IMG/VR virus record: IMGVR_UViG_3300035661_000001
Location: 372,001-436,000 of that record
DNA length: 64,000 nt
Reading direction: 5' to 3' (one strand)
Below the pieces are notes generated by a model. It saw only the letters and a program-made list of their open reading frames with translations, was not told where the DNA came from and made no database searches. Below are positions 40,712 to 60,802 of this stretch, piece after piece. Every line of letters begins with the position of its first letter. The stretch's first letter is position 1. A program made the translations under genes and the position numbers.

Positions 40712-40720
40712 CCCGGTAGT

Positions 40721-40810
40721 GGCACGCCGATTGCAATATACACTTCCTGTGCCAATCAAGATAGCATCATAGGTTATGGCATTAGGTTTGCATTAAGCAA
40801 GTTGCTTGCC
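40721..40810. promoter_or_regulatory. Two head-to-head sigma54 -24/-12 pairs
   Basis: TGGCACGCCGATTGC..GTGCC (40721-40753) and TGGCATTAGGTTTGC..GCAAGTTGCTTGCC (40778-40810). Confidence 0.8.
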
Positions 40811-40869
40811 ATGCTCTGCTGGTCCCCAGCGAGCTCGATCCCATCCTCCCCTAGTGTTCTGCTATTAGC

Positions 40870-41151
40870 ATGAACACCCTGCAAAACATCCTCTCGACCC
40901 TCGCCGCTCTTCACACCGCGGATGCCGCAGTGACCGCGCTCCCCGTTGATGCTTCCGACGGTGAGGAAGATTCTCTCATGGCGGAATTCACCGCCGCAGA
41001 AACTGCGCTGTGGCACATGGCTCCGGCGTGGTTCAAAGATGCCGCGAGCGTCGGCGGGCTTCATGGCACGGGTCTTGCCGGCGATCCGGTCTTCTGGGCT
41101 CTAGATGACGTGGCGGAGCTTTGCGCCATATTGGCAATCGCCGCGCTCTAG
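40870..41151 (+). CDS. Acidic hypothetical protein (paralog of 41365)
   Basis: MNTLQNILSTLAAL...ALW. Confidence 0.65.
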   Translation: MNTLQNILSTLAALHTADAAVTALPVDASDGEEDSLMAEFTAAETALWHMAPAWFKDAASVGGLHGTGLAGDPVFWALDDVAELCAILAIAAL

Positions 41152-41364
41152 CAACAAGCATGCCAAGGAGAGCTCGCTCGGGCTCTCCTTCCGGTTCGCA
41201 GTGCAAGACTGCTACGTCGTTGGTGACGAGATCGTGCTTGACGTCGAGCACCTTGTGGGCGGTGAATGGCGCCCGATCTTCATCTTCAGCGTCAAGGAAG
41301 CGGAGGAGCGAATCTTTACGCTGCCCATCTAGAGTCCCATCCTGTATTGGCTGACGGGTATGGC

Positions 41365-41622
41365 ATGAGCTACCTCGTCAAGCTGAATCAAGTTCTCGCG
41401 ACCCTCGCAGCCGTTGACTCTTCCGTCTTCACTGGAACGGAGGATGAGATGGCTCTGTGGGACGCGGTGATCGAAGCAATCATCGAAATCGTCCGCCTTG
41501 ATCCGACGGCGGCGAAGTTCACGGCTGGCATGGATCCTGCCGCCATCTGGCAATTCGCGCAGGAATCCGATTTTGATTCTTGGCGCGATGTCGCCGCCAG
41601 GATCGACGTATCAAGCAAGTAA
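41365..41622 (+). CDS. Acidic hypothetical protein (paralog of 40870)
   Basis: MSYLVKLNQVLATLAAV...ALW. Confidence 0.65.
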   Translation: MSYLVKLNQVLATLAAVDSSVFTGTEDEMALWDAVIEAIIEIVRLDPTAAKFTAGMDPAAIWQFAQESDFDSWRDVAARIDVSSK

Positions 41623-41628
41623 CGTGCC

Positions 41629-41660
41629 AAGGGTGGAGCCTCCGGGCTACCACCCTTTCG
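41629..41660 (+). terminator. Intrinsic terminator
   Basis: AAGGGTGGAGCC-TCCG-GGCTACCACCCTTT. Confidence 0.75.
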
Positions 41661-41677
41661 GTTTACCGTTCTACTGT

Positions 41678-41710
41678 GGTACGAGGTTTGCATAATGCAA
41701 TTAGCTAGCC
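41678..41710. promoter_or_regulatory. Head-to-head sigma54 pair
   Basis: GGTACGAGGTTTGC-ATAAT-GCAATTAGCTAGCC. Confidence 0.75.
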
Positions 41711-41769
41711 AACTCCGGAGTACAAGCTAGAGAGCTCGGTCCCATCCTCTAACAGATATCGGCAGTGAC

Positions 41770-42099
41770 ATGGCAACTCACCTGATGGTTCTCGGTAATC
41801 ACGAAGCTGTCAACGCGTCTCTCTTCAACCCCAACCGTTACAGTTTCCGGTGGAATGCGGATCACACGGCGTTCGAGCCCATCCTCGCCCGGTACTGGGA
41901 CGATGCCAGCTACATCGCGAAGCGCTCACGCGACACCGCCCCGGAATGGAAGAAGCCCATCGCCGAGCCGGATTTCCATGAGAGGAGCTGGCTCGCGTTC
42001 CAGGCTTTCATGCACGATCCCATCGATGATGTGCAGGAGCCCGAGTTCTTCCCGCGTGACGCGACGGAGACGATGCCTGCCGATCACATGTGGTTCTGA
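41770..42099 (+). CDS. Hypothetical protein
   Basis: 109 aa, high GC3. Confidence 0.65.
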   Translation: MATHLMVLGNHEAVNASLFNPNRYSFRWNADHTAFEPILARYWDDASYIAKRSRDTAPEWKKPIAEPDFHERSWLAFQAFMHDPIDDVQEPEFFPRDATETMPADHMWF

Positions 42100-42134
42100 G
42101 AGATTCCCATCCTTCCACGAGGAGAGCCTGAATC

Positions 42135-42311
42135 ATGCAAACGCCTTCCATCAAGCATCCCGAGAGCAACCACCTTTTCGCCCGGCGCGCCGCCGAGGAT
42201 CAGATCCTCGTCGCTGGAGCCGGCACCTTCGCCACCGTCGAGGATGGCAAGCTGTTCACCACACCAATCGCCGCTCCCGATCAGTTCGCGAAGTGGCGCC
42301 CGGTCCAGTGA
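42135..42311 (+). CDS. Small hypothetical protein (58 aa)
   Basis: GGAG RBS; manual translation MQTPSIKHPESNHLFARRAAEDQ... Confidence 0.55.
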   Translation: MQTPSIKHPESNHLFARRAAEDQILVAGAGTFATVEDGKLFTTPIAAPDQFAKWRPVQ

Positions 42312-42359
42312 GGGGAGGGAGAGGATCGCCTCTCCCCTTCTCTTTTGCCGTTCTGTCAT

Positions 42360-42463
42360 GGCACACTGTTTGCAAACTGCGAGAGTTATGCCATTCGCTA
42401 TTCCCGAATCGCGAATCACGGCTAGCCGTTGGCATGGGTTGTGCAATATGCAATGTCGAAGCC
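42360..42463. promoter_or_regulatory. Two head-to-head sigma54 pairs after a terminator hairpin (42310-42346)
   Basis: GGCACACTGTTTGC-AAACT-GCGAGAGTTATGCC (42360-42392); GGCATGGGTTGTGC-AATAT-GCAATGTCGAAGCC (42431-42463). Confidence 0.8.
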
Positions 42464-42749
42464 AAGCCCGGATCGGACCCTCCGGGCGCACTAAGAGGAG
42501 ACCGGCGACCCATCCTCTAACAGGATCCCCGAGGACTACCGGCAACGCTGCGAAAGCGAAGCTGGACTCGGGTGGAACGCTCCCCGGTCCCAAGCTGCAA
42601 GAGCAGGGTCCAAACGGTGCGGCACCGTCAACAACGCCGCGGCGATAGGGAATACCTACCGCACCCTAATCGGAGGAGAGAGAGACCCATCCCCGAAAGG
42701 GGTTCTCCAAAGGGGTCAGTCACTCTCCAACCAAAAAGGATTCACCGCC

Positions 42750-44081
42750 ATGAACTCCCTCACGTCGCTCTCTTCCGCCGTCGCTCTCCCCGATAACTCC
42801 GCGTTCTTCGCGGATCTCCTCTCCGATGATCCCGAGATTCGGGCGCTGCTGGACGCGGCGTATGGTAAGGGTAGCACCAAAGTGCCCGGCGTCACCGTGA
42901 CCCGCTCCGGTAGCCTCAACGCCCGTCCCCTCATCGGCGGGATCAAGCCCGGCGGACGCAAGTCCCGTGCCAACGGCGATAAGCCCGCTCGGGCTCCGAA
43001 GGCGGACAAGCCCGCCAAGGAAGCGAAGGTGGAGCCCATCCTCGTCGAGCTGACGTGGAAGTCCAACGGTTCGGGCGCTGCCCGCTTCCTGGAAGCTCTC
43101 TCAATGGCGGGGAAGCGGTTCCGCTGCTACGAGACGGATGGTGTTGACGTGGTTTCCGGCGAGTGTCACTCGGCGGGAGATCCCGTCCTCGCCTCCAACG
43201 GCGCCCCTCTCACGTACTTCGCTGGCGACATCGCCCAGCGGTCCGACGAGCGCGCCGCGATCGAAGCCTGCTTCGACGGCTCCTCGCGCTCCGAAGCGCT
43301 CGGGACGCAACTGGATCAAGCGCGCATGCTCGCCCAAACGGCGATACGGCGCGGCATGTCGGGCAAGGTCGAGCACCGCGCCTTTCACTACAGCGGGATC
43401 GACAATTCCCCGCGCACCGTGGTTCACGCGGTGTATCACACGGGCGTCGTCGCCTCGGCTCACCCCTGGCGTTCTCCGGATGCTCACTCGGCGATCTGGT
43501 CGGTCGAGGGTTACGTGAAGGGACTCCCCCGTCCCATCCAGAAGCTGCTCGGGGACATGTGTGCCCGTGAGCGTCTGGCGACCGACGAGGTGATCACGCT
43601 GGGCAAGCTCCGCGCCTTCGTGGTCGCGGAGGATCAGGAGAGCTTCGAGTCTCTCATGAACCGGGAGTACCCCTCGTCAAAGGAGATCGAGACCATCTTC
43701 GCCCTGGATGGCATCACGGTTCAGGACTACACGGTGGTCGAGAAGCTGCACCCGGTCGTGGTCGCTCTCAAGCGCGAGCGTGGCATGAGACTCCTCGACC
43801 GTCTCGCCAAGCTGGAAACGTTCGCGGCGATCCGTCTCGCTGAGGTTCAGCGCAAGATCGATGCCGTCGAGGGCGGCGATACCGCCAAGTCGATCGCCGA
43901 CATGTACGCCGAAGCGGACGCATGCGGATCGATCGCGACGCTGGAGGAAAGTATCCTGTCCTGCTACGATCCGCAGGCGCGCATGTACTACACCCTGCCC
44001 GTGGGCACGGTGATCCCCGCCGGTCCCATCGAGCGCCTCGCGGCGCACCTCGCCGAGCACAGCCTGGATCTCACGAAGTGA
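42750..44081 (+). CDS. Large hypothetical protein (443 aa) with basic N-terminal linker
   Basis: AAGGA RBS, strong GC3 bias, no recognisable family. Confidence 0.8.
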   Translation: MNSLTSLSSAVALPDNSAFFADLLSDDPEIRALLDAAYGKGSTKVPGVTVTRSGSLNARPLIGGIKPGGRKSRANGDKPARAPKADKPAKEAKVEPILVELTWKSNGSGAARFLEALSMAGKRFRCYETDGVDVVSGECHSAGDPVLASNGAPLTYFAGDIAQRSDERAAIEACFDGSSRSEALGTQLDQARMLAQTAIRRGMSGKVEHRAFHYSGIDNSPRTVVHAVYHTGVVASAHPWRSPDAHSAIWSVEGYVKGLPRPIQKLLGDMCARERLATDEVITLGKLRAFVVAEDQESFESLMNREYPSSKEIETIFALDGITVQDYTVVEKLHPVVVALKRERGMRLLDRLAKLETFAAIRLAEVQRKIDAVEGGDTAKSIADMYAEADACGSIATLEESILSCYDPQARMYYTLPVGTVIPAGPIERLAAHLAEHSLDLTK

Positions 44082-44691
44082 TCCCGCCGGGGAGGGTTCG
44101 CCCTCCCCATTCTCACCCGGACGGATAGGCGAGCGCCTATCCGTCCCCTCCCTGGGATCGATCCCATCGGAGAGGAGAGAGGCGGCTCACAAGCGCTGGC
44201 GGGCGGGCGTGAGTATCTTAACGCGCACGTCTCTCTTCTCTCCGCTGCGACCCATCCTTGGAGCACAGCACCGGCTAACCCATCCTCATTCACACGTGGA
44301 GAAGGTCATGCAACATCTCATCATCGGGTTTCTCATGGGCGGCGCCATCCTGGCGATCGAGCAGGCGGACCGGCAGATCGTCCCGATTCTCACCGGCGTC
44401 CCCATCACTTCCGAGACGCGCTGGATCAGCGCGGACGCCTACAACCGGGCGGGCGAGTTCCTCTCCGAGTGCGAAAGCCGCACCGGCTGCTTCACCTCCT
44501 GATCCCATCCCCAGCTACGTCGAGGTTCCTCATGAATGATCGAATGGGTACGTACGTCACCACGGTCGTGGGCGGACGCCTGTGCATCAACGACGGGGTC
44601 GGCTGGCATCCCATCAGCGCCGCCTGGCTCGCCCAGCACGGCTGCTTGTTCCGCAAGCGGTAACCAATCCCATCCTCTGAGGAGACTCCAC

Positions 44692-45009
44692 ATGTGGAGA
44701 GACGATGAGATCAACAGGCTGGATCATCCAGCCCCCGACGGATATGTCCGCGTGGCTGCGGAAGATCCTCCCATCGACAAGGATGACGACTACGCTCTCA
44801 TCATCTGCCACGTCGTTTCCTGGCTCGGGAAAGGTTTCATGCCGGCGGTTCGATACTTCGATCGCTCCGGCACCTTTCGTCCCTGCCACAACGGCGACGC
44901 CCATCGCGGAGAGGATCGAGCTGCCTATGACTCCGCTGTCACGGAAGGGCGCAAGATCCTCGCCGACATGCAAGCGCTCACGAAGTCCCACACGTCTCCC
45001 ATCTCCTGA
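44692..45009 (+). CDS. Hypothetical protein
   Basis: GAGGAG RBS, MWRDDEIN... Confidence 0.6.
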   Translation: MWRDDEINRLDHPAPDGYVRVAAEDPPIDKDDDYALIICHVVSWLGKGFMPAVRYFDRSGTFRPCHNGDAHRGEDRAAYDSAVTEGRKILADMQALTKSHTSPIS

Positions 45010-45016
45010 GGACGCC

Positions 45017-45250
45017 ATGAACCAGAACAGCAAGACCGCGCCCGTTCGCAACGCCACCCACGACGAGGCTCTTCTCGCCGACGAGGCGAAGTATGCCCCC
45101 GGCGGACGTGTCCCCGCCCATCTCCAGGTCGACGACTACGAACCCGCGGGCTTCACTCGCATCACTCGTGCTCGCCCGAGCAAGCGCGCCCAGAGCGCGG
45201 AGCGCGAGCGGTTCGACACGCGCCGGCAGCCGCGCGAAGGCAAGTACTGA
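45017..45250 (+). CDS. Hypothetical protein
   Basis: GAGG RBS, MNQNSK...; stop followed by TCCCATC. Confidence 0.6.
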   Translation: MNQNSKTAPVRNATHDEALLADEAKYAPGGRVPAHLQVDDYEPAGFTRITRARPSKRAQSAERERFDTRRQPREGKY

Positions 45251-45403
45251 TCCCATCGGGGATGTAGGTCTCGGGTTGGTAAGGCTGGATCATAGGCACT
45301 TCGGTGCCCCCGCACCAATCTTTGCTCTCTCTATAGGAGAGGGGTAAGAAAGGTTTTGAACGGCGGTTGAGTCCAGCGCTCGAAACTGAACGCATGTTTC
45401 TGC

Positions 45404-45481
45404 GGGGTCTTCCCATCGATGGTTAGAGTCCTGCCGTCAAACGTAGGATGGTGCGGGTTCGACTCCCGCAAGACTCCACCA
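45404..45481 (+). tRNA. Atypical/degenerate tRNA-like element (8-bp acceptor stem, G3:U70, encoded CCA)
   Basis: GGGGTCTT/AAGACTCC-A-CCA; T-arm GCGGG-TTCGACT-CCCGC; anticodon arm TCCTGC-CGTCAAAC-GTAGGA; 5' side of the D-stem is CCCATC. Confidence 0.6.
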
Positions 45482-45621
45482 AGAAGATCACGTGAAGTAT
45501 CTTCGTACATCCCATCAACGACGACGCGACCGCGGAGTCAAGGCTCGACACCGCGAACCGGGGATGCGTTGGAACCGTCGCAAGGACAATCCTTCACCAA
45601 AGCCCGCCACGGCTACGCCTG

Positions 45622-46068
45622 ATGTTCAGGAACACACCTAAATCCCATCTCACCAACCTTCGGCACGAGGTCATGATGAATCAGATCAGCGAAAAGGCGA
45701 AAGCGTTCAAGGCGGCAATGGTGGCGAAGCGAGCCAAGGAGAAGCTCCAGACCGCCCATCGAGATGAGCAGCACGCCAAGCGTACCGAGGCGGGTTACGT
45801 CGACACCGCGCAGAGCGAGCGCGCCGACGACTTCGACTGCGCCCGAGCCTGGGACGCCATGGAGGCGTCCGCGGAGAAGACCTCCCATCGACACTCCGCG
45901 AAGCACGAGGCGCAGGTCGCCCGTCTCGCCGCCGCGCAGCAGGCACGGGTCGCCCGCGGGGAAGCGGACCCCGAGCCCATCCCGGTCAACGACCGCAGCC
46001 ACAACGAGCCCTTCCCGGTCGTGGAGTACAGCCCGGTCCGCGTCGCGCCGGATTTCGACGAAGAGTGA
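45622..46068 (+). CDS. Hypothetical helical protein
   Basis: High GC3; start may be 45673 (GAGG RBS). Confidence 0.65.
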   Translation: MFRNTPKSHLTNLRHEVMMNQISEKAKAFKAAMVAKRAKEKLQTAHRDEQHAKRTEAGYVDTAQSERADDFDCARAWDAMEASAEKTSHRHSAKHEAQVARLAAAQQARVARGEADPEPIPVNDRSHNEPFPVVEYSPVRVAPDFDEE

Positions 46069-46123
46069 TCACCTGCCCCGGCGCCGAAAGGTTCCGGGGC
46101 TTCGCTCTTTTCTTTTCTGTCTT

Positions 46124-46197
46124 GGCACGGGCTTTGCAATATACACTTCTCATGCCAACCCAATGGCACATCTTTTGCAATCTGCAATGTCCGGTCC
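46124..46197. promoter_or_regulatory. Two head-to-head sigma54 pairs after a terminator (46075-46120)
   Basis: GGCACGGGCTTTGC-AATAT-ACACTTCTCATGCC (46124-46156); GGCACATCTTTTGC-AATCT-GCAATGTCCGGTCC (46165-46197). Confidence 0.8.
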
Positions 46198-46239
46198 AAA
46201 CCCCGGAGCACCCATCCTCTAGAAGCCCCCGGCTAACCC

Positions 46240-46701
46240 ATGCACTACGCAATCGAGATCGTCGGTTCTTTCCTGGGTGTTGCCATTCCCGCGTGGTTGC
46301 GCGTGTTCGACTGCCGCAAGCCCATCGGGGAGGAGTTCTCCGCCAAGGCACCCTGGACGTATACCTACGAAGGCAAAACGTTCAGCCCGGCTTTGCTCGG
46401 CTCCGAAACCGCCGCGGTGGATCTCGGATTGCGAACCGAGAAGGAGAACAACGCAAGCTGCCCATCCTCCGGCTCGGGTTACGGCGACACTCGGACCAAT
46501 GAGTCGGAAGCCCATCTGGCAGTGACTCGCATGATCGAGAGCGCCATCCAGCATCACGAGAAGTGGCTCTGGGCAAACGCTCAACCCAAGTCGACCGATG
46601 GCGGCGGGTGCTACTACCAGCCCATCGCGGTCGCCCTCTGCAACTTCGGCTGGTCGGTCATCGCTGACGGTCGGCACTACGTCGTCCCCCAGTACGTCTA
46701 A
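46240..46701 (+). CDS. Hypothetical protein
   Basis: 153 aa, high GC3, TAA-CCCATC end. Confidence 0.6.
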   Translation: MHYAIEIVGSFLGVAIPAWLRVFDCRKPIGEEFSAKAPWTYTYEGKTFSPALLGSETAAVDLGLRTEKENNASCPSSGSGYGDTRTNESEAHLAVTRMIESAIQHHEKWLWANAQPKSTDGGGCYYQPIAVALCNFGWSVIADGRHYVVPQYV

Positions 46702-46730
46702 CCCATCTCAATCTTCAGAAGAGGTACGTC

Positions 46731-47174
46731 ATGCAAGTCATTCTGATGAGTGGTATCCCGGGAAGCGGTAAAGCGACCCTCGCCAAGGAATTGGGTGGTC
46801 CCCTGACCGTTGTCTGTTCTGCCGACGATTACTTCGTCGATCCCATCGAGGGCGCGTACAACTTCGATCCATCCAAGTTGTCGGAAGCGCACGGCGACTG
46901 CATGCGCAAGTTCGTTTCCCATCTGCTCCTCGACGAGGCGGATACCATCATCGTCGACAACACCAATCTGACGGCACTGGAGCTTGCTCCGTACGTCGCC
47001 GTGGCGGCAGCCCATCATGCCAGCGTGGAGATCGTTACCGTTAACTGCAACGTGGATGTTGCGGTGGAACGGAACACCCACAATGTTCCCATCGGTTCCA
47101 TCCGTCGGATGGCAAGGACGCTCCTCGACCGGGCGCTCCCGCCTTACTGGAACGTCATTCAGACGGTGCGCTGA
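46731..47174 (+). CDS. AAA_33 / polynucleotide-kinase-like P-loop protein
   Basis: GIPGSGKAT, SADDYF, IIVDNTN, RNTHNVP. Confidence 0.85.
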   Translation: MQVILMSGIPGSGKATLAKELGGPLTVVCSADDYFVDPIEGAYNFDPSKLSEAHGDCMRKFVSHLLLDEADTIIVDNTNLTALELAPYVAVAAAHHASVEIVTVNCNVDVAVERNTHNVPIGSIRRMARTLLDRALPPYWNVIQTVR

Positions 47175-47191
47175 CCCATCCGAGAGGTGTC

Positions 47192-47401
47192 ATGAAGTTC
47201 ATCGACTGCAATAGTCCGGGCTGCATCTTCGTCGGAGAACAGGTTCACTGTGACGGTCTCTCCTACCTGGGAGGTCATCCCTGTCCCATCTCCGACGAGC
47301 TGGCAACCAAGCTGATGACGGACCCGGGCGACGAGGAAGGTCCCTGGACTCTCCAGCCGGCGCCGGCGTTCTGGGCTGACAACAACGGCAAGCCTGACTG
47401 A
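47192..47401 (+). CDS. Small Cys-rich hypothetical protein
   Basis: GAGG RBS; TGA-CCCATC end. Confidence 0.55.
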   Translation: MKFIDCNSPGCIFVGEQVHCDGLSYLGGHPCPISDELATKLMTDPGDEEGPWTLQPAPAFWADNNGKPD

Positions 47402-47419
47402 CCCATCTGAGGAGCACAC

Positions 47420-47614
47420 ATGATCGTTAAGGTAACGTTCAGCATTTCCGGGAACGGTCAAAACGGAATGGGATGTGTTCCCGAGCCTGGGAAGTTCGAC
47501 ACCGATCCCATCACCTGGGCGATCGGTTTGGAATACTTCTCCGCTTCCGAAGCGCTCGTGTGCTGGGATCCGTTCCAGGACGGTTCCCTCTACTGGAAGC
47601 CCAAGGGCGACTGA
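47420..47614 (+). CDS. Small hypothetical protein
   Basis: GAGGAG RBS; TGA-CCCATC end. Confidence 0.55.
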   Translation: MIVKVTFSISGNGQNGMGCVPEPGKFDTDPITWAIGLEYFSASEALVCWDPFQDGSLYWKPKGD

Positions 47615-47643
47615 CCCATCTTCTACCTTCCACGGTGATCGTC

Positions 47644-47913
47644 ATGAATCGTAAACCTAGGACGAACGGACCGAACCTGCACATGTGCAATCCTTTGGCG
47701 GTGCCTACCCCATCGAAAAGTTACATGTTCGGCGTGGAGATCACCGATCAGAACCAAGCCGAGCTGTACGATGCCTATCGGTCGGGACAGTCTATCGGGG
47801 ATGCGTTCTGGTTCGCCGAATGCATGTACGATAAAAAAGAGCGTCTTGCTCTGATCGACCGTCGCGTCGCCGGGGGCATGTCGTTCCACCCATCCTCTCA
47901 CTCACTACGGTGA
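47644..47913 (+). CDS. Hypothetical protein
   Basis: MNRKPRT... high GC3. Confidence 0.5.
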   Translation: MNRKPRTNGPNLHMCNPLAVPTPSKSYMFGVEITDQNQAELYDAYRSGQSIGDAFWFAECMYDKKERLALIDRRVAGGMSFHPSSHSLR

Positions 47914-48443
47914 TGATCATGATGATCGACTGCAAGTGTTCGGGCAACGTGGCGTGTTCCGGTTGCAAAGCGGCGGCAGCGCAGGAGCCCCGAGCGGAAC
48001 GCCAGGCGCCTCCCGCTCCCGAGACCCATCGTCCCTGCACTCGCTGCAAAGGCGAGGGAACGATTCCCGATATCTTGAACAAGTCCAAGATGCGCGACTG
48101 CCTCTCGTGCGGCGGGACCGGCGAGTTCGCACCCATCAACCTGGATGATCTCCTGAATCGCATCCGGGCGAGCCAGGGCAAGAACAAGGGTCGGCTCCGC
48201 GCCAGCATGACGTCTCCCATCCGCAAGGACGGGATGAATGCGGCGCGAGCCTACTACGTCTGGCGCATGGCGCGCTTCCACGGCGGGCAGGATACCACCA
48301 TGCCCATCACGGCTTCGTACTGCGTCCACGGTGATCCCTTCACCGACAAGCTCGACGCCATCGCGGATCACATCGCCAAGCAAGCCTTCGGCACGGATCT
48401 TGCCGGGGTCGCTCGCTGGGCTCGTGCCTTCGGGATGGTGTGA
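47910..48443 (+). CDS. Protein with DnaJ-type CxxCxGxG zinc finger
   Basis: CTRCKGEG and CLSCGGTG; TGA-CCCATC end. Confidence 0.65.
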   Translation: MMIMMIDCKCSGNVACSGCKAAAAQEPRAERQAPPAPETHRPCTRCKGEGTIPDILNKSKMRDCLSCGGTGEFAPINLDDLLNRIRASQGKNKGRLRASMTSPIRKDGMNAARAYYVWRMARFHGGQDTTMPITASYCVHGDPFTDKLDAIADHIAKQAFGTDLAGVARWARAFGMV

Positions 48444-48472
48444 CCCATCCGTTAACCGAAGTCGAGGTTGCT

Positions 48473-48721
48473 ATGACGGATACACAACGGGCTCTTCGTG
48501 AGGCATTCTTCAAGCAGGAGGAGCGGCTCGCCCATCTGGTGGATGACAAGCCGGAGAACCCTTCCAATCTGGAGAAGGCAGCTTTCTGTGAAGCCATGTT
48601 CGATTTCCGTGCGGCGTGGTTGCATGCCGTCGGCTTCCGGGACGGTCTGCAAAAGGCGTGCCAGCTTGCGGGGATCCAGGGTTTCGAGGAAGCGGTCCCA
48701 TCCACTACTCCGGCGGGGTGA
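48473..48721 (+). CDS. Hypothetical protein
   Basis: GAGG RBS, MTDTQRALRE... Confidence 0.55.
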   Translation: MTDTQRALREAFFKQEERLAHLVDDKPENPSNLEKAAFCEAMFDFRAAWLHAVGFRDGLQKACQLAGIQGFEEAVPSTTPAG

Positions 48722-48725
48722 GGAT

Positions 48726-49016
48726 ATGAATCTACCCCGCGGCTACGAAGTCGGTGTCGTTCGTGTCTCGCGTTGCGATGAAGCGCAGGAGCATGCCAGG
48801 CTCACCTCGACCCATCGTCAGGGTGACTGCTGTGTCATTCAAGATGCGCTGTTCGAGGATGGTGTGGAGGTCGAGGGCGCAGCCACGGTCTCCCGCTGGA
48901 ACAGCGGCAAGCAAGTCTTCCCCGAACCCATCAGTTCTCCGAACTGTCTGTGGGACGAGGAGCTCGAAGCGGATTACCTGACCGAACTCTATCGGCAGGA
49001 TCAGGACAGGGAGTAA
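48726..49016 (+). CDS. Hypothetical protein
   Basis: GAGG RBS, MNLPRGYEVG...; TAA-TCCCATC end. Confidence 0.55.
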   Translation: MNLPRGYEVGVVRVSRCDEAQEHARLTSTHRQGDCCVIQDALFEDGVEVEGAATVSRWNSGKQVFPEPISSPNCLWDEELEADYLTELYRQDQDRE

Positions 49017-49570: not shown

Positions 49571-49632
49571 TGGGCATCATTGGGCGCTGCCTCGGAAGGG
49601 GTCGCGCCCTTTTGCCGTTTCGTTTTTTGGTT

Positions 49633-49665
49633 GGCATACTGTTTGCACTCTGCACGATAGGTGCC
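49633..49665. promoter_or_regulatory. Head-to-head sigma54 pair
   Basis: GGCATACTGTTTGC-ACTCT-GCACGATAGGTGCC. Confidence 0.8.
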
Positions 49666-52533: not shown

Positions 52534-52888
52534 CCCATCGGACGAGGACCACTGATCATGGATATGAAAACGATTCGTTTCCTCGACGAGCTGATCGCTA
52601 CTCCGGAGGGTCAAGCGCTCATCCGGTCGCGGTGGCTTCATGCTCAAGAATCTTCCAAAGCCAAGGCGGCGGCGGAATGCAAAGCTGCCGAAGAAGCACG
52701 CAAGGCGGGTCCTGGTCCCTTGACGGGATGGGATTGCTGGGCGTGTGGATGAGCGTGCGGAGCGGATCTCGCGGGAAGCGCTACGTTGCCCATCGTGCCA
52801 CTGTCTGCACGGTCTTCGAGCGGCGCCGGGGGCGCCTGATACCGAGAGACGCTACTAGCCCATCCTCGATTGGGGATCAGGTGATGCC

Positions 52889-53221
52889 ATGTCGAACCTC
52901 AGAGCCTTCCAAAAAGAGTACGCGAAGATCCGAGGTCGCTCGCATTGCGAGAACCGAAAAGAATTCAACCGGCTAGCTCTTGCGTGGCTGGAAAAGCGGG
53001 GCTTGGAAAAAACCCCGGCGAACTGGATTCGAGCAGCGAACGAGGTTCCCATCCCCTGTCGCCGATGTGCTCAGACCGGGCGATTCATAACGGGGACGAT
53101 GAACGGTCAACCGACCGGACCTGGCGGTGATTGTTACCGCTGCTCTGGTAAGGGCTGGCAAAACGATGATGATGCTCGGCGCAACTACGGCGCGGACATT
53201 CATCAGATAGTCCGCCTCTAA
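52889..53221 (+). CDS. Zinc-finger hypothetical protein
   Basis: CRRCAQTG and CYRCSGKG; TAA-CCCATC end. Confidence 0.6.
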   Translation: MSNLRAFQKEYAKIRGRSHCENRKEFNRLALAWLEKRGLEKTPANWIRAANEVPIPCRRCAQTGRFITGTMNGQPTGPGGDCYRCSGKGWQNDDDARRNYGADIHQIVRL

Positions 53222-53238
53222 CCCATCGAGGAAGAACC

Positions 53239-53508
53239 ATGGACGTCGATACGATTCTTCAAATCTGCTGTGGTACGGGAACCGGACCCTCCAAGCCCAT
53301 CGTGGCGGAGGAAGGGAAACCCAAACCGCGGTCGCTGAAGTTCACCATGATGTATAATGCCCGATACACGGGTTATTACTACGTCAGCCCCGACAGCCCC
53401 AATCCCCATCAGGCTGCGCTCGATCACTGTCGTCACACCTCCAATGAGGCGTGGCACGGAACGCCTTCCGACAAGGCTCCTGGCACCTGGGAAAATTACC
53501 GGGGCTAA
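53239..53508 (+). CDS. Hypothetical protein
   Basis: GAGG RBS; TAA-CCCATC end. Confidence 0.55.
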   Translation: MDVDTILQICCGTGTGPSKPIVAEEGKPKPRSLKFTMMYNARYTGYYYVSPDSPNPHQAALDHCRHTSNEAWHGTPSDKAPGTWENYRG

Positions 53509-54322
53509 CCCATCGTCTCGACCATCGGAGAATGTTTATCATGTGTGACAAGATCGGTTGCCCTGGTCCTGCATCATGCCCCTCCGTTGAAGACGAGAAG
53601 TTGGTTGCGATGACCGACCCATCGGCATTCCTTCTGCGTGAGGTTCAGCGGTTCGAGGGCATCACGATTCTGATTGGGGATTGCCGCGATGGCGATGCCT
53701 ACTTCGCCCTGCCGCGGGTTCTCACATTCGAGGACAAGACCTTCGCTCTGACCGGCTGGAACAGCGATGCCCATCAAGCCTATTGGAAGGTCGGTGGTCT
53801 GATCGCCAAGCGCGGGGCGCGGATCGATCGCCCGATTGAAGGGTCAGAGCTAGGCTTCCCATCCGGGTCACCGGCGCGGGAGTATGCGCAACCCTGCGCG
53901 GAGGTAATCATGAAGTGGACGTGCTTCGGAGTTTGGAAAAACCGTTTCGTATTCCGAACGGACGACCCATCTGGATCGTGGGTATCGATGGTGTGGCACT
54001 GGCGCGTACGGGTGCGTCCGTGAAGCCGCAATTGAGAGCGGTGCTCAGCTACAACCAGCTACTACCCATCCTCAGCGATTATGAGCTGAAGATGGTCATC
54101 GCTCGGTTGAACACCGACTACTTCGCCGAGGCATACCATCGACGGGTGTACCTCGGGATCCTCGCCCAGAACGGCTGGACCGATGAAGGGTTCGATCAAG
54201 AGACGCTTCGTCGTATCGATGCTGGATGGGATATCAAGACGCCGCCGCCGCGGGGTGATCATCCGATGGCGAAGCCCGAGACTCGAAAGAGTTCCGGGCT
54301 TTTGCCCGTTCTGTTTTTTGGT

Positions 54323-54355
54323 GGCACGAGCCTTGCATATAGCACTTTACGTGCC
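54323..54355. promoter_or_regulatory. Head-to-head sigma54 pair after a terminator (54271-54320)
   Basis: GGCACGAGCCTTGC-ATATA-GCACTTTACGTGCC. Confidence 0.8.
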
Positions 54356-54912
54356 CAGCAAGTGCGTTCCTAGTAAATTCCGGGCACCCATCCTCTAGCA
54401 GTCTGGTCGGTAAGAGCAAGTCGTTGCCTACCGATAACAAGGTGGGCGGCGCATTGGGAAGCAACGAATCCCATCTAAATTGTTAGGGTTGACTGTTCAG
54501 GGTCATACTGTTTAAGGTCTGGAATATCTGAGTCCCGGCACCCTTCGATCGATGTAGTTGCAGTCCCATCCGTTTGGTGGTATCGCATAAACCAGCCAGT
54601 ACGTTTGTCGGTAGTCGAATAAACCGTCATCACGCGCCAATTGAGTTTCGGGGAAGCCGATCCGAATGTAGGTCCCGAGTAAAGGAACACAGCCCATCTA
54701 CGGAAAATTTGGGCTAGCAATCTCAAGCAGCGCGACGCAGCAGAAGGGCGCCGTTTCGTTTTGGTCGGGAGTCTAAGATTGTCCCATCAGAAACGTGGCG
54801 GAACTGGAACTGGCACTCAACGAATGAAAGGTAGGTTCGGCTTATGCCACGAGACTCGCCGTGATAGTCGTTGGTTCGGGGGATACAGGGTGGAGCCCAT
54901 CCCCAATTTGTG

Positions 54913-54993
54913 GGCAGTGTTTCCGGTTGTTGGTATCCGGTGAGGGGTTTGAACCGCCCTTCATAGTGGGTTCGATTCCCATCATTGCCTCCG
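54913..54993 (+). tRNA. Degenerate tRNA-like element
   Basis: Acceptor GGCAGTG/CATTGCC-T-CCG; D-stem CCGG/CCGG; T-arm GTGGG-TTCGATT-CCCAT; irregular anticodon loop TTTGAACCG. Confidence 0.55.
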
Positions 54994-55012
54994 CTAGTGA
55001 TCCCGGTTAGGG

Positions 55013-55399
55013 GTGGATGAAAAGACACGGGTCTCTCATATATTAAAGACCACCGTCGTGATCACTGGCAACAACTTCTATCGACTCATCTTTTCATCGA
55101 AGGTGTCTATGGCAACGGAAACATTCGGTCGTTCGCCGTACTACGGCTGGGAGATTCTTTCCATCGACGAGGCACTTGCCAAGATTGGGATCGAATCCCA
55201 TCTCGTCAATGGTTTGTCTGATCTCACCAGACAGCACAATCGTCTGTACTACAAGGAGGGCGAGCGGATCCACAAGCCCACGGAGTCGCAGCTCCGTCGG
55301 CGCTGGGCTTTTCCCATCCGAGGCAGCGAGTTCAAGTTCGTCGTCGTCCAGCGCAAGGAAGAGGGCGCCAGCGGTTACGAGTTCTGTATCGGGACCTGA
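55013..55399 (+). CDS. Hypothetical protein
   Basis: ORF ending TGA-TCCCATC; start uncertain. Confidence 0.5.
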   Translation: MDEKTRVSHILKTTVVITGNNFYRLIFSSKVSMATETFGRSPYYGWEILSIDEALAKIGIESHLVNGLSDLTRQHNRLYYKEGERIHKPTESQLRRRWAFPIRGSEFKFVVVQRKEEGASGYEFCIGT

Positions 55400-55704
55400 T
55401 CCCATCGGCGGAGGAACCATATTCTATCTCGAAGGTTTCTTGTTCTGCGAAGGGCTTACCGCCGCGGACCATGGCAATGCCATGATGGAGGCGGGGAAAG
55501 TAGCAGACGTCGCGACCCATCGGACTGTCATCCTGGTCTATCGTACCGTGGGGGACACCGAGATGATCTGCACCAAGATTCAATCTTTCGAGGATTGCCG
55601 GAGGGCTTGTCCCATCGATAAAAAAGATGCGGACGATCTGCTTCGCGATTACATGAAGTCGGCGTTCACGATGCTCTCTGACTTGCGAGGGTAGGAGACC
55701 CATC

Positions 55705-55926
55705 ATGGAAATCGACAAGCTGGTCAAGGACCTGACGGAAAACGCCGGGCTCTATCCCGGATCACGGGTGGTTATTGGAACATCCTCTCAGGTTCTCAAC
55801 AGGGAGATCCGGGGGATGGTCGCGGCGAAACGACTTCCCATCGCCGAAGGTTCCACGCTGGGCGACGAGGATGGCGAATGCAGCAGCCTATTCCTCGTGA
55901 CGACGATACCTGTTTCGGCAGAGTAA
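55705..55926 (+). CDS. Hypothetical protein
   Basis: AGGAG RBS with CCCATC between RBS and ATG; TAA-CCCATC end. Confidence 0.6.
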   Translation: MEIDKLVKDLTENAGLYPGSRVVIGTSSQVLNREIRGMVAAKRLPIAEGSTLGDEDGECSSLFLVTTIPVSAE

Positions 55927-56029
55927 CCCATCAACGGAGATCGATCATGACCATTGCAAGTGCCGTTCTAGCTCAAGGTTCGTTAAAGAGCAGGCGCACC
56001 ACCAAAATCTGATCCCATCGGAGATTGAC

Positions 56030-56266
56030 ATGTATAGTGTTCACCTCTTCTTCCTGATCGATCGTGACACTCTCAAGGTCGACCGCGCTGCGATCTGGAG
56101 CGATGGTACTCCGTGCATCGATCAGTCTCGATACATCCCGGTCAAGTGGACCTCATGGGATGGCAAGACCCATCAAGAAGCGCACGATCGAGCCACGAAC
56201 TATCTCCGAACTCATGGCAACAGCGCCATCGGTGAAGCGCTCACGAAGATGGTACTCGGGGGATAA
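56030..56266 (+). CDS. Hypothetical protein
   Basis: GGAG RBS; TAA-CCCATC end. Confidence 0.6.
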   Translation: MYSVHLFFLIDRDTLKVDRAAIWSDGTPCIDQSRYIPVKWTSWDGKTHQEAHDRATNYLRTHGNSAIGEALTKMVLGG

Positions 56267-56450
56267 CCCATCAGAATGGAGCGATCTTCATGGAAGAGCT
56301 GAGCCTCAAAGGTATTTCTCTGAAGGGAAGGAATCGTATCCGGGGGAAGGAATCGTATCCGGGAATTGGGATCCATCTGGATGGTTCTCCTTTACCGAAA
56401 CACGGTTCGCTTCAGCCCCATCCGCCTCCCCGGCGGAGGATGGTTATGGT

Positions 56451-56810
56451 ATGAAACACGATCATTTACGTGTCATCCTTCTCGCCGAATTCATGAGCGA
56501 TGATACCGCTCTAGAAGATGCCGTGCTCGCAATCTATCGGAAGCAAACCGAAGATGAGAAACGGCAGGGAGCGACAACCCATCACAACAAGGTTGGCTTC
56601 AGCGGGTGTGATGCTCGTCAAGCCACCTACTGTGCCAAGTGGTTGCTCGACACGAACGGGAAACGGAATCCCCATCGACATCTGTCTGGCAGATTCTTGG
56701 ATTGGGCACGACGGGCGATGCCGAAGTACGCCGGACAACTGGCGACGATCGTGGCAGCGAAGGAAGAATCTTATCTCGTCGGCGAGAGGATTGCGATTCA
56801 GCAGTTTTAA
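56451..56810 (+). CDS. Phage hypothetical protein
   Basis: AVLAIY.KQT.DEK....T.HHNKVGFS..DA...KYAGQL; GGAGGA RBS. Confidence 0.65.
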   Translation: MKHDHLRVILLAEFMSDDTALEDAVLAIYRKQTEDEKRQGATTHHNKVGFSGCDARQATYCAKWLLDTNGKRNPHRHLSGRFLDWARRAMPKYAGQLATIVAAKEESYLVGERIAIQQF

Positions 56811-57212
56811 TCCCATCTTTCGAGGACATCATTCCATGACTACCGACGAAGCAATCGAGGACATCTGGCGGCGGGTCGCGACCTCTGTTCGGGAGGACGT
56901 CGACCCATCGGTTCTCCAGTGGGTGTCTGACAGACTGTGCCGCGCTGATTGGTGGTACGGTGATGGCAAAACGACCGACAACAAGACTGTCGGTTGGGGA
57001 AACAAGCACCCATCTACAAAGGATTTTCCAGAACGATCATGATCGGTAACAAGGTGACGCCGGCGAAGCGATACTTTGTTGGTCATCTTCAGATACGGGC
57101 AGCCGATGCCAAGGTCTCCCTCCGGGAGATGCTCGGTACGAACACGTTCCCATCGTTACCGCTCGACGCCGAAGGCAATCGACTCTACCTCTAAACCATC
57201 TACGGAGGCTAC

Positions 57213-57434
57213 ATGAAACAAGCATACGACGTGGGCGACAACGTGGATGGTACGGTCACCAAGGTGGGCAGGACCCATCTGACCCTTACCATCGGAGATA
57301 CCACGGGACGACTGCCGCTCTCGGATGTGCGTGCGGTTGCTCGACGTGCGATCCCCATCGTCGGAGCCGACATGAACGTGACGGTCGCAGGGACGAAACG
57401 CGGTAAGCTGGTTCTGAGTTTCAGCCCGGGCTGA
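57213..57434 (+). CDS. Single S1 RNA-binding domain protein
   Basis: YDVGDNVDGTVTKV...GRLPLSDV...VGADMNVTV......KLVLS; GGAGG RBS. Confidence 0.7.
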   Translation: MKQAYDVGDNVDGTVTKVGRTHLTLTIGDTTGRLPLSDVRAVARRAIPIVGADMNVTVAGTKRGKLVLSFSPG

Positions 57435-57629
57435 TCTCAATCGTTGCGCAGTCGAAAGATGAGAGATCATGCACAACGGATCAGGCGTGAGGATCAAAAA
57501 ACCTACACCGAAGACCGCCCATCCGTTGGAGACTTCGCGCAACAACATCTGTAAGAGATAAGGAGAAAGGATGCGAATCCGAGATGGTCCGCTCTGAATG
57601 ATGTTGACGGGTCGCGAGCTTGACATTCC

Positions 57630-58004
57630 ATGAGGATCAAGCTCGCGACTTCCTTGTTCCCATCGGAGGATAAGATGTTCGGTACTCAAGAGACAACGCA
57701 AAAGTTTCAGAAGCTCGGCTTCTCTCTTCCCAAGCGGAGAGGCGGTGGTAACCCAGACTTCGGACCCATCCTGGCGTTCATCGAGCGTAGGATTGCCGGG
57801 GTGATGGAGTTCTATACCAACTGCCGTTCCGAGGCGGTGTTCTCTCGTGAGCTTCGGGAAACGATCAACCGAGAACTTGCACCCATCATCCCCGACACCG
57901 AGAAGACATTCAACCTGGAGCCGATGAACTTGGTTCTCATGGTTCGGACTACCAAGGACCCTGGTGTTCTTTTGGTCCGCGCGGAAAACCCCAATCTTTG
58001 CTGA
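57630..58004 (+). CDS. Hypothetical protein
   Basis: 124 aa; start may be 57675 (GGAGGA RBS). Confidence 0.55.
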   Translation: MRIKLATSLFPSEDKMFGTQETTQKFQKLGFSLPKRRGGGNPDFGPILAFIERRIAGVMEFYTNCRSEAVFSRELRETINRELAPIIPDTEKTFNLEPMNLVLMVRTTKDPGVLLVRAENPNLC

Positions 58005-58444
58005 TAGCATCGAGGTGCCACGTGGGCATTCCCATCTTCATCGGATTCTCTGAAGCGAACGTCGCTTTCTTTAACCTTCATTCCAAAAAGGTTGGCGACG
58101 ACTTCTCGGTCGATGCAAACTTCTGCGGCGATCCTTCTGATCCCATCAACAAGAAAAGGTGTTTCAGTGGCGAAGAAGACGACGAACGGAATCATCAGTG
58201 CCGCAACCGCGACGTGCGCCGCTCGCCGCGCGCTTGTCGGCGTTGCTCACCAAGCTGAACGTCCAGATCAGGGACGGAAGCCGGTCTTTCTACGCGGGAG
58301 TCCGGGAGAAGGATATTCCCGACGGGATGTTCCCCTTCGGCGCGCGCGCGTTCCAGAAGAAAGATCTGGGCTGGAAAGTGAAAGTCGGCGAGCGCGATGG
58401 TTCGATCAAGGTCCGTCTCCCTGGCGAGCCGGGAGACCCATCTG

Positions 58445-58648
58445 ATGGAAAAGCAAGTCAATGCCGGGGGAGAGCAGCTCTTCGCTCTCGCCCTGAAGAT
58501 CCCATCGGGACTCTCCGAAGCGGAAGTCACGAGGCGAGTTCATTCGATGCTGTTCGGTCTCAGCGCGGCGGCGAAGACCGCCGGAGTCGAGGTCGTCAAG
58601 GGTCCGGTTCTGGAGCGGTTCATTTCTGCTCATCTGACCGGCAAGTGA
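58445..58648 (+). CDS. Hypothetical protein
   Basis: GGAG RBS, MEKQVNAGG... Confidence 0.5.
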   Translation: MEKQVNAGGEQLFALALKIPSGLSEAEVTRRVHSMLFGLSAAAKTAGVEVVKGPVLERFISAHLTGK

Positions 58649-59245
58649 AACAAGAAAGTCGAGGAGGTCCCATCGTGCAGAAAAGTTCTTCGTGGTTCAT
58701 GGTTGCCGCGGTTCTCGCGGCGGTGTCTTCGCTGGGCTGCGCCGATCGTGGCAAGCCTCCCGAGGTTCCCAAGACGTTGACCAGCACCATCCCATCCGTG
58801 ACGCCGGCGGACCCGAACGTGTCGCGCTGGTGTTTCTCCACCGCCGAGACCATGACGTGCGTGCAGCGCACCACGCTCCCGAGCGGCGTCAAGAAGGTGG
58901 AGATGATCTACATTCCCATCCTTCCTTCGGCGCGGTAAATCTATGTCGAAGACCACTATCAAGACCAGCGAGCTTCAAGGGGCGTTCGATCGATACCGCC
59001 GGCTCCCCCTTGCTGGTGATCTGGAGCCAAACCTGGACTTTCAGTGGTGGCAAGAGGGAGTCGCCAATCTCGCCGAGGTGACTCCCATCATCGCCAAGCA
59101 GTACCGAGAGGACCGGACTGCTTGCATCATGCACGGTCCGTGCTCAATTCCCGGGCGGTGATCTCGACGCGATCCGCCGCTTCTGTGAATGGTGTCTTTT
59201 TGGTGGTGTGGGCAACATGGTTCTCGCAACGCATCAGGATGCGCC

Positions 59246-59515
59246 ATGACCCATCCCGTGACCGGGCTTGACCTTCACGAAGGGGACGCCGAGACTGACC
59301 TCGCCGCGTGGATCAAGTATGATCATCGACGTGGCGAATATGAGGGGGACAAGTACCGTTATGATTCTTGCCGGACAACGGCGGGAGCGGATCATCATCG
59401 CCCTCTCGTGCTCAAAACACGCAAAGCATACGCGGCTGCCCATCAGGCTTTAACCACGTTAGGTTATGAGCCTTCCGGTTACGAACCGGAACCTGAGACC
59501 TACTTCAACAAGTGA
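59246..59515 (+). CDS. Hypothetical protein
   Basis: MTHPVTGLDLHEG... Confidence 0.5.
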   Translation: MTHPVTGLDLHEGDAETDLAAWIKYDHRRGEYEGDKYRYDSCRTTAGADHHRPLVLKTRKAYAAAHQALTTLGYEPSGYEPEPETYFNK

Positions 59516-60460
59516 GCCAATCATGATGAACTTCTGCAAAGGTCTAGTCGAGTGGATCAAGGACGATCCTCCCCGCTCGCTTGCCTTGATCGGCGTGGGA
59601 GCAATGGTCACCTTGATCGTTCTCTGGATGATTAGGTGAATCGTGAAGCTCAAAGAGCTGCGAATTTTTCTCGACACCCATCTTGCCGATGGTACGCTCA
59701 CTGACGAGATGGAAATCAAAAGCCGTACCGGCGGATATGAGGCGCAGCATCTTGCACACGTTTCAATCGAGCGCGATCATAACGGGATCGAATACCTCGA
59801 AAAAGAGGTCCTGAACTTCAGTGCCGATCCGTGAGACTCATTCAGGAGAATCGATCATGAGCTACGACACAATCATCCTTCTTTTCATCGTGTTCTTTGC
59901 TGGGATCGGATTCCTGATTGCCCATCTTACCGGCATGATGATCGGTGGCTTGATTGCCTTCTTGATCATTCAGTTTCTGAGGTATCTCGCTCTTTCGTTC
60001 TGAGGACGATTGTACAGCGACGTACAACATCCAACCCATCGGATCTCCATGATGATGAGTCTCATGTTACAAAACGAAGATATGAAATACTCGCTTCCGA
60101 CCCGCTGGGAGATGTACGGCATCTTTCGTGGTAAGAGCGAGTATGGTCGTCGTTCCAGGTATCAGGCTCGCATGAATCGGAACGATGCTTATCTTGCCGC
60201 CAAGGGCAAGAGCAAACCCATCAAACATGGGGAACGATCGTGAGAGAGACTGACGACGAATGGTATACGCGGATACGAACCACCCCGGTCGAATCGTATT
60301 ACGAAGTCAATCCGTTGGTGAGTGATCTCGCGGAGATCGCCCGCCGCTGTGCGACCGACCCATCGCTGCGCGCTATCAAGGATCAAGATGCAACGATGGT
60401 GCCTTGTACCTGCGATGAGTGCGAAGGCACCAGTTTCGTCTGACCCATCCAAGGAGAAGT

Positions 60461-60700
60461 ATGCTGAACGATAACAAAGTGTTGAAAGGTTTGAGCAACG
60501 TCCTCACAGGCATTGCTTTCATTCCGCCCTTCGTGCTCAGTTTTCCCATCGGAGCGGTGGCGGATAAGCTGGAGCGCCGGTTTGGAGCGGACGCCGCGAT
60601 CTATTTCCTGGGCGCCTGCTGGCTTCCCATCGGCTTCACTGCTTTCGTGGCAGCGACCGTGATCGACCAGATCGCCCCGCCTGACAGCGTGCGGCTCTGA
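60461..60700 (+). CDS. Small membrane protein
   Basis: AAGGAG RBS; two hydrophobic segments. Confidence 0.6.
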   Translation: MLNDNKVLKGLSNVLTGIAFIPPFVLSFPIGAVADKLERRFGADAAIYFLGACWLPIGFTAFVAATVIDQIAPPDSVRL

Positions 60701-60769
60701 ACAAAAACTAGACGGGAGCGAGGGGCGCCGGCATGCCCCTCGCTCCCTTTTTCTTTTCTTATTTTGAGT

Positions 60770-60802
60770 GGCATGGTCTTTGCACTCTGCGAAGTTCGTG
60801 CC
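60770..60802. promoter_or_regulatory. Head-to-head sigma54 pair after a terminator (60714-60765)
   Basis: GGCATGGTCTTTGC-ACTCT-GCGAAGTTCGTGCC. Confidence 0.8.

Follow-up and report, generated by a model that had tools for sequence, protein, structure and literature searches.

Ten 35-bp sites, each made of two opposed copies of the sequence read by bacterial sigma-54 RNA polymerase, sit in front of gene blocks in a GC-rich end segment of a 452-kb phage genome (JGI 3300036715 Ga0373634_0000014, or IMGVR_UViG_3300035661_000001). The same paired site is common in uncultivated phages but was not found in 185,579 bacterial and archaeal genomes, so it looks like an undescribed, phage-specific way of starting or controlling transcription, though its dependence on sigma-54 is inferred from sequence alone. 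The stretch analysed, here termed the window, is 64,000 nts long, and the sites are confined to a block of 55–63% GC within it, while the genome elsewhere is about 32% GC. The elements and the features that accompany them are as follows.

40720..40754 (+), dyad 1a; forward box 11/11, reverse half 9/11, with AC in place of the reverse GC
40777..40811 (+), dyad 1b, in tandem 57 nt after 1a; followed by CCCATCC at 40840 and the gene 40870-41151
41677..41711 (+), dyad 2; followed by CCCATCC at 41741 and the gene 41770-42099
42359..42393 (+), dyad 3a
42430..42464 (+), dyad 3b, in tandem 71 nt after 3a; followed by a 285-nt ORF-free leader and the 443-aa gene 42750-44081
46123..46157 (+), dyad 4a; its right half resembles that of dyad 1a (the AC variant)
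46164..46198 (+), dyad 4b, in tandem 41 nt after 4a; followed by CCCATCC at 46211 and the gene 46240-46701
49632..49666 (+), dyad 5; CCCATCC lies 8 nt after it
54322..54356 (+), dyad 6; followed by about 750 nt without a called gene
60769..60803 (+), dyad 7; CCCATCC lies 8 nt after it
40672..40698 (+), GC-rich, terminator-like hairpin 21 nt before dyad 1a; equivalent hairpins lie at 41630-41656, 42312-42337, 46076-46099, 49583-49608, 54274-54299 and 60714-60747, each 20-23 nt before a first dyad, with a T-rich spacer
39750..64000 (+), GC-rich island of small + strand genes that holds all the dyads; it continues past the window end and lies at the contig terminus
40840..40846 (+), first of the CCCATCC boxes; the window has 63, of which 60 are on the + strand, all from 34984 onward, and within the island they lie mostly 29 or 17 nt before start codons, one following each putative promoter region and most internal genes

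The observation from which this work began, a sequence-only reading that listed ten 33-bp palindromes of form GG-N10-GC-N5-GC-N10-CC, is confirmed, and all ten elements are where that reading put them. The pattern itself gives 10 hits in the window against 0.37 expected. Eight of these are among the listed elements, and two, at 51520 and 52759, are chance GC-rich matches that had not been listed. The two elements with AC in place of the second GC (40721 and 46124 in the 33-bp numbering) are present as described. With the flanking T and A, each element is 35 bp (TGGCAY-N5-TTGCA-N3-TGCA-N7-TGCCA). A scan treating both halves equally (sum of half-site scores at least 18 of 22, lengths 34–37 allowed) returns exactly these ten, all of 35 bp and none in the AT-rich 40 kb, while 100 shuffles gave none, and a chance or composition artefact is rejected. 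A random position in the GC-rich block scores at least 8 of 11 as a half-site with P = 0.0025, yet 10 of 10 forward boxes have such a reverse half in exact register. Forward halves score 10–11 of 11 and reverse halves 8–10 of 11. An eleventh element lies just beyond the window (locus L077, position 20221). The 5-bp GC-to-GC spacing is fixed here and in related huge phages, and the 35-bp geometry is conserved in relatives down to 65% RF2 identity. However, across all phages the gap between TTGCA and TGCAA ranges over 2–5 nts.

Each half has the GG and GC dinucleotides 10 bp apart that characterize sigma-54 −24/−12 promoters, for which the consensus mrNrYTGGCACG-N4-TTGCWNNw comes from a compilation of 186 promoters (quoted in PMC2725144). 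The ten window elements alone are too few to reveal the weak flanking preferences of that consensus, but 288 viral half-sites give m 0.68, r 0.73, r 0.60 and Y 0.74 before TGGCAC, then G/A 0.96 and A/G 0.76 after it, at positions not used in any search pattern. All ten elements lie in intergenic DNA, after terminator-like hairpins and with the better half facing + strand genes at a suitable distance, and the island has no sigma-70-like promoters above chance. Single non-palindromic boxes also occur in the same phages, so the box is the unit.

The paired form is not peculiar to this phage. IMG/VR holds more than 130 distinct dyads, in huge phages and in phages of 35–60 kb, and in the small phages arrays lie between divergent TerL/portal and small-gene operons. 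In contrast, the strict dyad gave zero hits in 596 Gbp of cellular genomes (185,579 species genomes), and full-text literature searches found no description of paired sigma-54 boxes in phages.

The sequence-only reading's interpretation is partly supported. Its proposal that the halves are sigma-54-type boxes on opposite strands, with a fixed geometry in this genome, holds. Its description of the arrangement as convergent does not: if the start lies 12 nts after the C of GC, the two starts fall at positions 27 and 9 of the 35-mer, which makes them divergent and 18 bp apart. Nor is its inference of a GC-rich host such as Myxococcota supported, as the GC-rich DNA is a terminal island in an otherwise AT-rich genome. 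The only host hint is a related island fragment binned with a Cloacimonadota MAG. Megablast and four tblastn searches for relatives among isolated phages gave nothing close from which host or annotation could be borrowed, and homologs of the RF2 gene gave no indication of host.

The explanation preferred, though held to be only about as likely as not, is that each element is a compact, dyad-symmetric promoter site built from two opposed sigma-54-class boxes sharing one centre. What the analysis shows is the reality, register, position and phage distribution of the sites and their match to the consensus; that sigma-54 binds them, that transcription starts there, and any activator bypass or sigma-54 titration (both raised in the sequence-only reading) are inferred or conjectural. 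In this view the dyads mark the starts of at least seven transcription units in a terminal block of small genes: the upstream unit ends at a hairpin, 20–23 nts later comes the dyad, and then a 5′ leader with a CCCATCC box precedes the first gene. The reader of each half would most likely be the host's sigma-54 RNA polymerase, presuming that the host has rpoN. With standard spacing the polymerase could sit on the site in either orientation but not both at once. In small phages the site, often in arrays, would serve both divergent operons. In this genome only the rightward half faces genes, and it is the better conserved, while the leftward half has no gene to serve and is presumably kept because the symmetric site is the functional unit (occlusion, competition or reciprocal stimulation).

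Symmetry-based bidirectional promoters are established for sigma-70 (Warman et al., bioRxiv 10.1101/2020.01.31.928960). There too, promoter elements on opposite strands coincide, divergent starts are most often 18 bp apart (the figure predicted here), one polymerase binding event excludes the other, and the promoters are enriched in horizontally acquired DNA. However, those arise from overlapping −10 hexamers, whereas here the −12 boxes do not overlap (5 bp lie between the GCs) and the reader would be sigma-54, which that paper does not mention. The two boxes of a dyad lie in a 35-bp frame, within one polymerase footprint. A bidirectional promoter is also expected to have divergent starts 7–25 bp apart and to serve divergent genes; the 18-bp spacing here is inferred, and small phages place dyads between divergent operons, but in this window the genes lie on one side only. 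Another parallel is with the early-promoter clusters at the entering end of phage genomes (T7 A1–A3 and the T5 pre-early region), where strong promoters for the host polymerase, often in tandem, lie at a genome terminus in front of many small genes of unknown function. Those are sigma-70 promoters and not dyads, and that the island enters first is inferred only from its place at the contig end.

Sigma-54 promoters normally need ATP-dependent activation, and no source for this was found. A phmmer search with E. coli RpoN and PspF found no homolog in the window plus 77 loci (for PspF-like proteins, counted as the 74 kb of this genome that was read plus 76 other loci). Single-protein locus searches also found nothing, but were too insensitive, and a PspF homolog search returned only enterobacterial copies of no use for a profile. 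Degenerate, exact-pattern DNA signatures for the RpoN box and for GAFTGA-TLFLDE hit 6 and 104 viral contigs in IMG/VR respectively, none of them dyad-bearing and none with dyads nearby. No shared upstream k-mers that could be an enhancer were found. The host could supply the activator, so these negatives lower the claim without excluding it. On the RNA side, no RNA run was found to contain this DNA, and matching to a sediment metatranscriptome at 80% likeness gave only two short contigs from a relative and no ends.

An alternative, considered unlikely, is that the dyad is an operator for a phage-encoded symmetric (dimeric or tetrameric) DNA-binding protein that mimics sigma-54 specificity or competes with sigma-54, and so switches neighbouring promoters on or off. 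The dyad symmetry, the conservation of the reverse half even where no leftward gene exists, the fixed spacing within the huge-phage clade, and the occurrence in control regions of arrays of 2–4 sites with a period of about 46 nts are in its favour. One such array, in a small phage, is flanked by good sigma-70-like promoters, so there the dyads could be operators. However, clustering of all ORFs of 100 dyad-bearing loci, with only about 7 kb on each side, finds no family shared beyond the terminase-side genes of one marine phage lineage. The spacing between halves varies among phages, single boxes occur alone, the flank preferences equal those of cellular sigma-54 promoters, and the same sequence occurs in very different phages with 28–65% GC, which points to a conserved host reader. 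Less likely still, the dyads may not fire but hold sigma-54 or its holoenzyme in stable closed complexes, as decoys that drain host sigma-54 or as roadblocks or insulators that back up the terminator just upstream. Sigma-54 holoenzyme does form stable closed complexes without an activator, and sigma-54 can bind DNA without core (PMC2725144). The lack of a detected activator gene or enhancer and the hairpin before every first dyad are consistent with this, and a symmetric site would block in both directions. But ten to eleven sites are few for titration, the island would then have no other candidate promoters, and the gene-facing half is systematically the better one, which a decoy or roadblock does not require.

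Two further possibilities are remote. One is that the palindrome extrudes as a DNA hairpin and is a promoter for a phage RNA polymerase, as for the N4 virion RNA polymerase, whose promoters are 5-bp stems with 3-nt loops. The inner TTGCA-N3-TGCAA could form such a structure, and the island lies at the genome end, where an injected polymerase would act first. However, predicted DNA hairpins are weak (−1.6 to −8.3 kcal/mol), with 8 of 10 no better than shuffles (z-scores mostly between −1.2 and +0.7), the N5 arms are less complementary than chance, the stems are invariant rather than covarying across unrelated phages, loop length varies over 2–5 nts and non-palindromic single boxes exist. A DNA or RNA hairpin is thus rejected, and the element is taken to be a protein site and not a structure. 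The other, the least likely, is that the elements are packaging, replication or recombination sites, for example terminase-binding repeats. In one small-phage lineage the arrays do lie just upstream of a TerS-like/TerL/portal operon, and many lie near contig ends. But repeats also break assemblies, which explains that closeness, and in this genome eleven copies are spread over 34 kb, each between a terminator and a gene, with a sequence that equals the sigma-54 consensus.

Sigma-54 is regarded as a tightly gated, enhancer-dependent system for a few cellular regulons, and phages are not known to rely on it. The analysis shows a fused, symmetric form of a sigma-54-type site, without hits in the cellular genomes searched, that recurs in many unrelated uncultivated phages at exactly the places where promoters and genetic switches sit. 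If the sites fire, phages have found a way to use or unlock the sigma-54 polymerase, which would bear on the long-standing question of how its activation barrier can be bypassed and would give a compact, orthogonal bidirectional promoter for engineering. If they only bind, they are a new kind of phage-borne sigma-factor trap or insulator. In either case they give a simple sequence marker for transcription-unit starts in huge-phage genomes whose genes have no recognisable homologs. A more far-reaching possibility, not excluded but unlikely on present evidence, is that a large and diverse set of uncultivated phages, from 40-kb podovirus-like genomes to 450-kb huge phages, has a private transcription channel of dyad sigma-54 promoters that fire without a classical enhancer, either through an unknown phage factor or through the dyad geometry itself. 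Phage genes would then stay on while sigma-70 transcription of the host is shut down, and in the huge phages the channel would drive a terminal block of pre-early genes whose GC-rich composition is set apart from the rest of the genome.

No known RNA family or tRNA was found in the window. A chimeric window, with two unrelated genomes joined at 39.75 kb, was suspected. This was rejected, as the same junction is in five contigs of 0.2–1 Mb and in a relative with 65% RF2 identity.

The GG-N10-GC-N5-GC-N10-CC pattern proposed by the sequence-only reading gives ten matches where 0.37 are expected. Eight of these are elements listed in that reading and two, at 51520 and 52759, are unrelated GC-rich matches, while the two listed elements that have AC in place of the second GC are also present. 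When the flanking T and A are added, each element is a 35-mer of the form TGGCAY-N5-TTGCA-N3-TGCA-N7-TGCCA – two copies of a 16-nt box, head to head. A scan that scores both halves equally and allows lengths of 34–37 bp returns exactly these ten. All are 35 bp, none lies in the first 40 kb, and 100 shuffles gave none. A random position in this GC-rich part of the window reaches 8 of 11 as a half-site with probability 0.0025, yet all ten forward boxes have such a partner in exact register. The gene-facing half is always the better one (10–11 of 11 against 8–10 of 11). The observation of ten paired boxes is thus confirmed, and it proves to be much broader than could be seen from the one sequence. 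A sub-class, represented at 40720-40754 and 46123-46157 and also in two other dyad-bearing loci, L128 and L045, has ATACAC in place of the reverse −12 box (AC for GC). It recurs with nearly the same right half in different phages, so it is a kept variant and not decay, and is perhaps a one-way version of the site.

The window is not uniform. Bases 1-39,750 are about 32% GC and carry replication and nucleotide-metabolism genes: DnaB, both ribonucleotide reductase subunits, PhoH-PIN, ThyX, a GMP-reductase-like enzyme, homing endonucleases and a release factor. From 39,750 onward the DNA is 55–63% GC and is packed with small + strand genes, roughly 100 in number, that have no Pfam or PHROG match except for one kinase-like ATPase. 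The change is abrupt, from about 32% to about 60% within 39,700-39,900. An artificial join was at first suspected. However, the window is part of a 451,948-bp metagenome contig (the samples are microbial mats and sediments), the same junction is present in five contigs of 0.2–1 Mb, and a relative whose release factor is only 65% identical, L358, has the same gene order and the same jump to 55–65% GC. The block runs on for at least 10 kb past the window, with GC falling to about 47%, and holds an eleventh element there. In two independent assemblies, and in another huge phage, it sits at the very end of the contig, which fits a region that enters the cell first, though that reading is an inference. 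The two very different compositions and codon usages within one genome may reflect early genes tuned to the host. Features of the sequence on either side of the junction, outside the dyads themselves, are as follows.

4476-5129: a 217-aa protein with a weak match to sigma-70 region 2 (E = 2e-4, below the Pfam cut-off), which may be a phage sigma factor for the AT-rich genes.
35194-36282: release factor 2; homologs at 60–85% identity lie on many contigs of 330–490 kb, which defines a large clade of huge phages, and its presence may point to stop-codon reassignment elsewhere in the genome.
36269-38560: a tandem array of small paralogous genes with CxxC pairs, on a strand that is extremely C-rich and G-poor (GC skew down to −0.6); the array is much longer, up to about 20 copies, in relatives.
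40405-40445: a GGTCTC hexamer repeat at the end of a small gene that encodes a hydrophobic, membrane-like protein; it attracts many unrelated reads, seen as a depth spike.
40656-40671, 41150-41165 and 41614-41629 (− strand): single sigma-54-like boxes that point leftward, placed immediately before three terminator hairpins; two of them lie 63–64 nt upstream of a dyad.
42465-42749 and 54357-55108: ORF-free stretches directly after dyads; the first folds better than shuffles (z = −2.35), and a metatranscriptome contig of a relative covers 42427-42591, and these may be non-coding RNAs or long leaders.

The ten elements mark seven places, three of which have two dyads in tandem, 41–71 nt apart. 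Each first dyad lies 20–23 nt after a strong GC-rich hairpin, and the spacer between them is T-rich. Downstream, after 8–85 nt, comes a CCCATCC box and then a start codon. The island has no sigma-70-like promoters above chance, and the dyads are therefore the only recurring promoter candidates at the heads of transcription units. The CCCATCC motif itself occurs 63 times against 7 expected, and 60 of these are on the + strand; 59 sites lie in 39,614-63,020 (for example at 40840, 41741, 46211 and 49675). Within the GC-rich island it is preferentially 29 or 17 nt before start codons and often overlaps the previous stop codon. Relatives have lineage-specific versions (CTCCCATTCAC, CCCATCTNATAACGG), and in L358 the count is 38 on one strand and 0 on the other. 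It looks like an RNA-level signal for processing or translation, or a second promoter type.

The box equals the sigma-54 consensus, and this was examined beyond the letters used for searching. In 288 half-sites from other phages, the five bases before TGGCAC and the two after it follow the weak preferences mrNrY and G-r, which come from the consensus compiled from 186 cellular promoters, as quoted in PMC2725144. The N5 arms of the two halves are not complementary (identity 0.27 against 0.34 in shuffled pairs), the predicted DNA hairpins are weak with 8 of 10 no better than shuffles, and single boxes without a partner occur in the same phages. The unit is therefore a protein-recognition box with sigma-54 specificity, and the dyad is two such boxes. 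That the reader is the host’s sigma-54 holoenzyme is the simplest inference, as the same sequence serves phages of 28–65% GC with unrelated structural genes, but it is not shown.

With the start taken as 12 nt after the C of GC, the predicted rightward start falls at position 27 and the leftward one at position 9. The two putative promoters would therefore diverge, with starts 18 bp apart and coincident footprints, rather than being ‘convergent’ as the sequence-only reading had it. Eighteen base pairs is also the commonest spacing of the symmetry-based bidirectional sigma-70 promoters of E. coli (10.1101/2020.01.31.928960), though that paper says nothing about sigma-54.

The element is widespread among uncultivated phages. 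A pattern scan of IMG/VR that fixed only part of the second half found 74 loci, and in nearly all of them the second half was a full inverted box. In a partial set of matches from a second scan with a variable centre, the gap between TTGCA and TGCAA peaks sharply at 2–5 nt, with almost nothing at 0–1 or at 6 and above. In contigs of 180–480 kb, nearly every intergenic box is a 35-bp dyad that follows a T-rich tail and precedes a lineage-specific CCCAT box. About a third of the loci belong to one family of aquatic phages, where arrays of two or three dyads lie in the divergent gap between a TerL/portal operon and an operon of small genes. [One of these loci, L158, also has good sigma-70-like promoters next to the array.] A family of proteins of roughly 60 aa with the motif SGKT..IAST.GN is shared by dyad-bearing phages of very different sizes (41 kb to 480 kb) and lies a few kb from the dyads, in the following loci.

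L011:2807-2995
L015:3001-3183
L054:682-870
L071:5642-5836
L037:6914-7345

In 596 Gbp of bacterial and archaeal genomes the strict dyad has no match. The loose pattern gives 69 matches there, whose second halves are not box-like, with the exception of two short contigs that look like phage fragments inside MAGs. Contigs filed in a Cloacimonadota MAG (L128, DAONDQ010000057.1) and in a Gemmatimonadaceae MAG (L095, CAZBHZ010000139.1) carry several dyads and many boxes and are probably such fragments within bins. L128 is a piece of a related island, with the one-strand CCCATC bias and protein similarity to the island of L358. These are the only host hints, and that from Cloacimonadota is weak. The suggestion of a GC-rich, Myxococcota-like host is not supported.

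Sigma-54 needs an ATP-driven activator, and none was found. No RpoN or PspF relative was detected in the window and 77 loci. No dyad-bearing contig is among the viral contigs that carry an RpoN-box or a GAFTGA-TLFLDE signature, no dyads lie near those genes, and no shared upstream motif was found. Only 74 of the 452 kb were read, and a host activator acting from solution remains possible; activators without a DNA-binding domain exist in some bacteria. Literature searches found no description of such sites.

The interpretation offered by the sequence-only reading is partly supported. The best reading is a phage-specific, dyad-symmetric promoter of the sigma-54 class at the heads of transcription units in a terminal gene block, and it is held to be about as likely as not. 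What the analysis shows is the existence, register and distribution of the elements and the agreement of each box with the sigma-54 consensus; binding by the host holoenzyme, firing and the positions of the starts are inferred from sequence alone. The element pairs two boxes of sigma-54 type, where the symmetric bidirectional promoters already described are read by sigma-70, and it is not a proven member of either class, since the activator feature of sigma-54 promoters was looked for and not found within the DNA read and the starts are predicted only.

Of the alternatives, an operator for an as yet unidentified symmetric phage protein is doubtful but the most plausible, and a trap or roadblock that does not fire is less likely still. 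A hairpin promoter, given the weak predicted hairpins and non-complementary arms, is improbable, and a packaging or replication site is the least likely.
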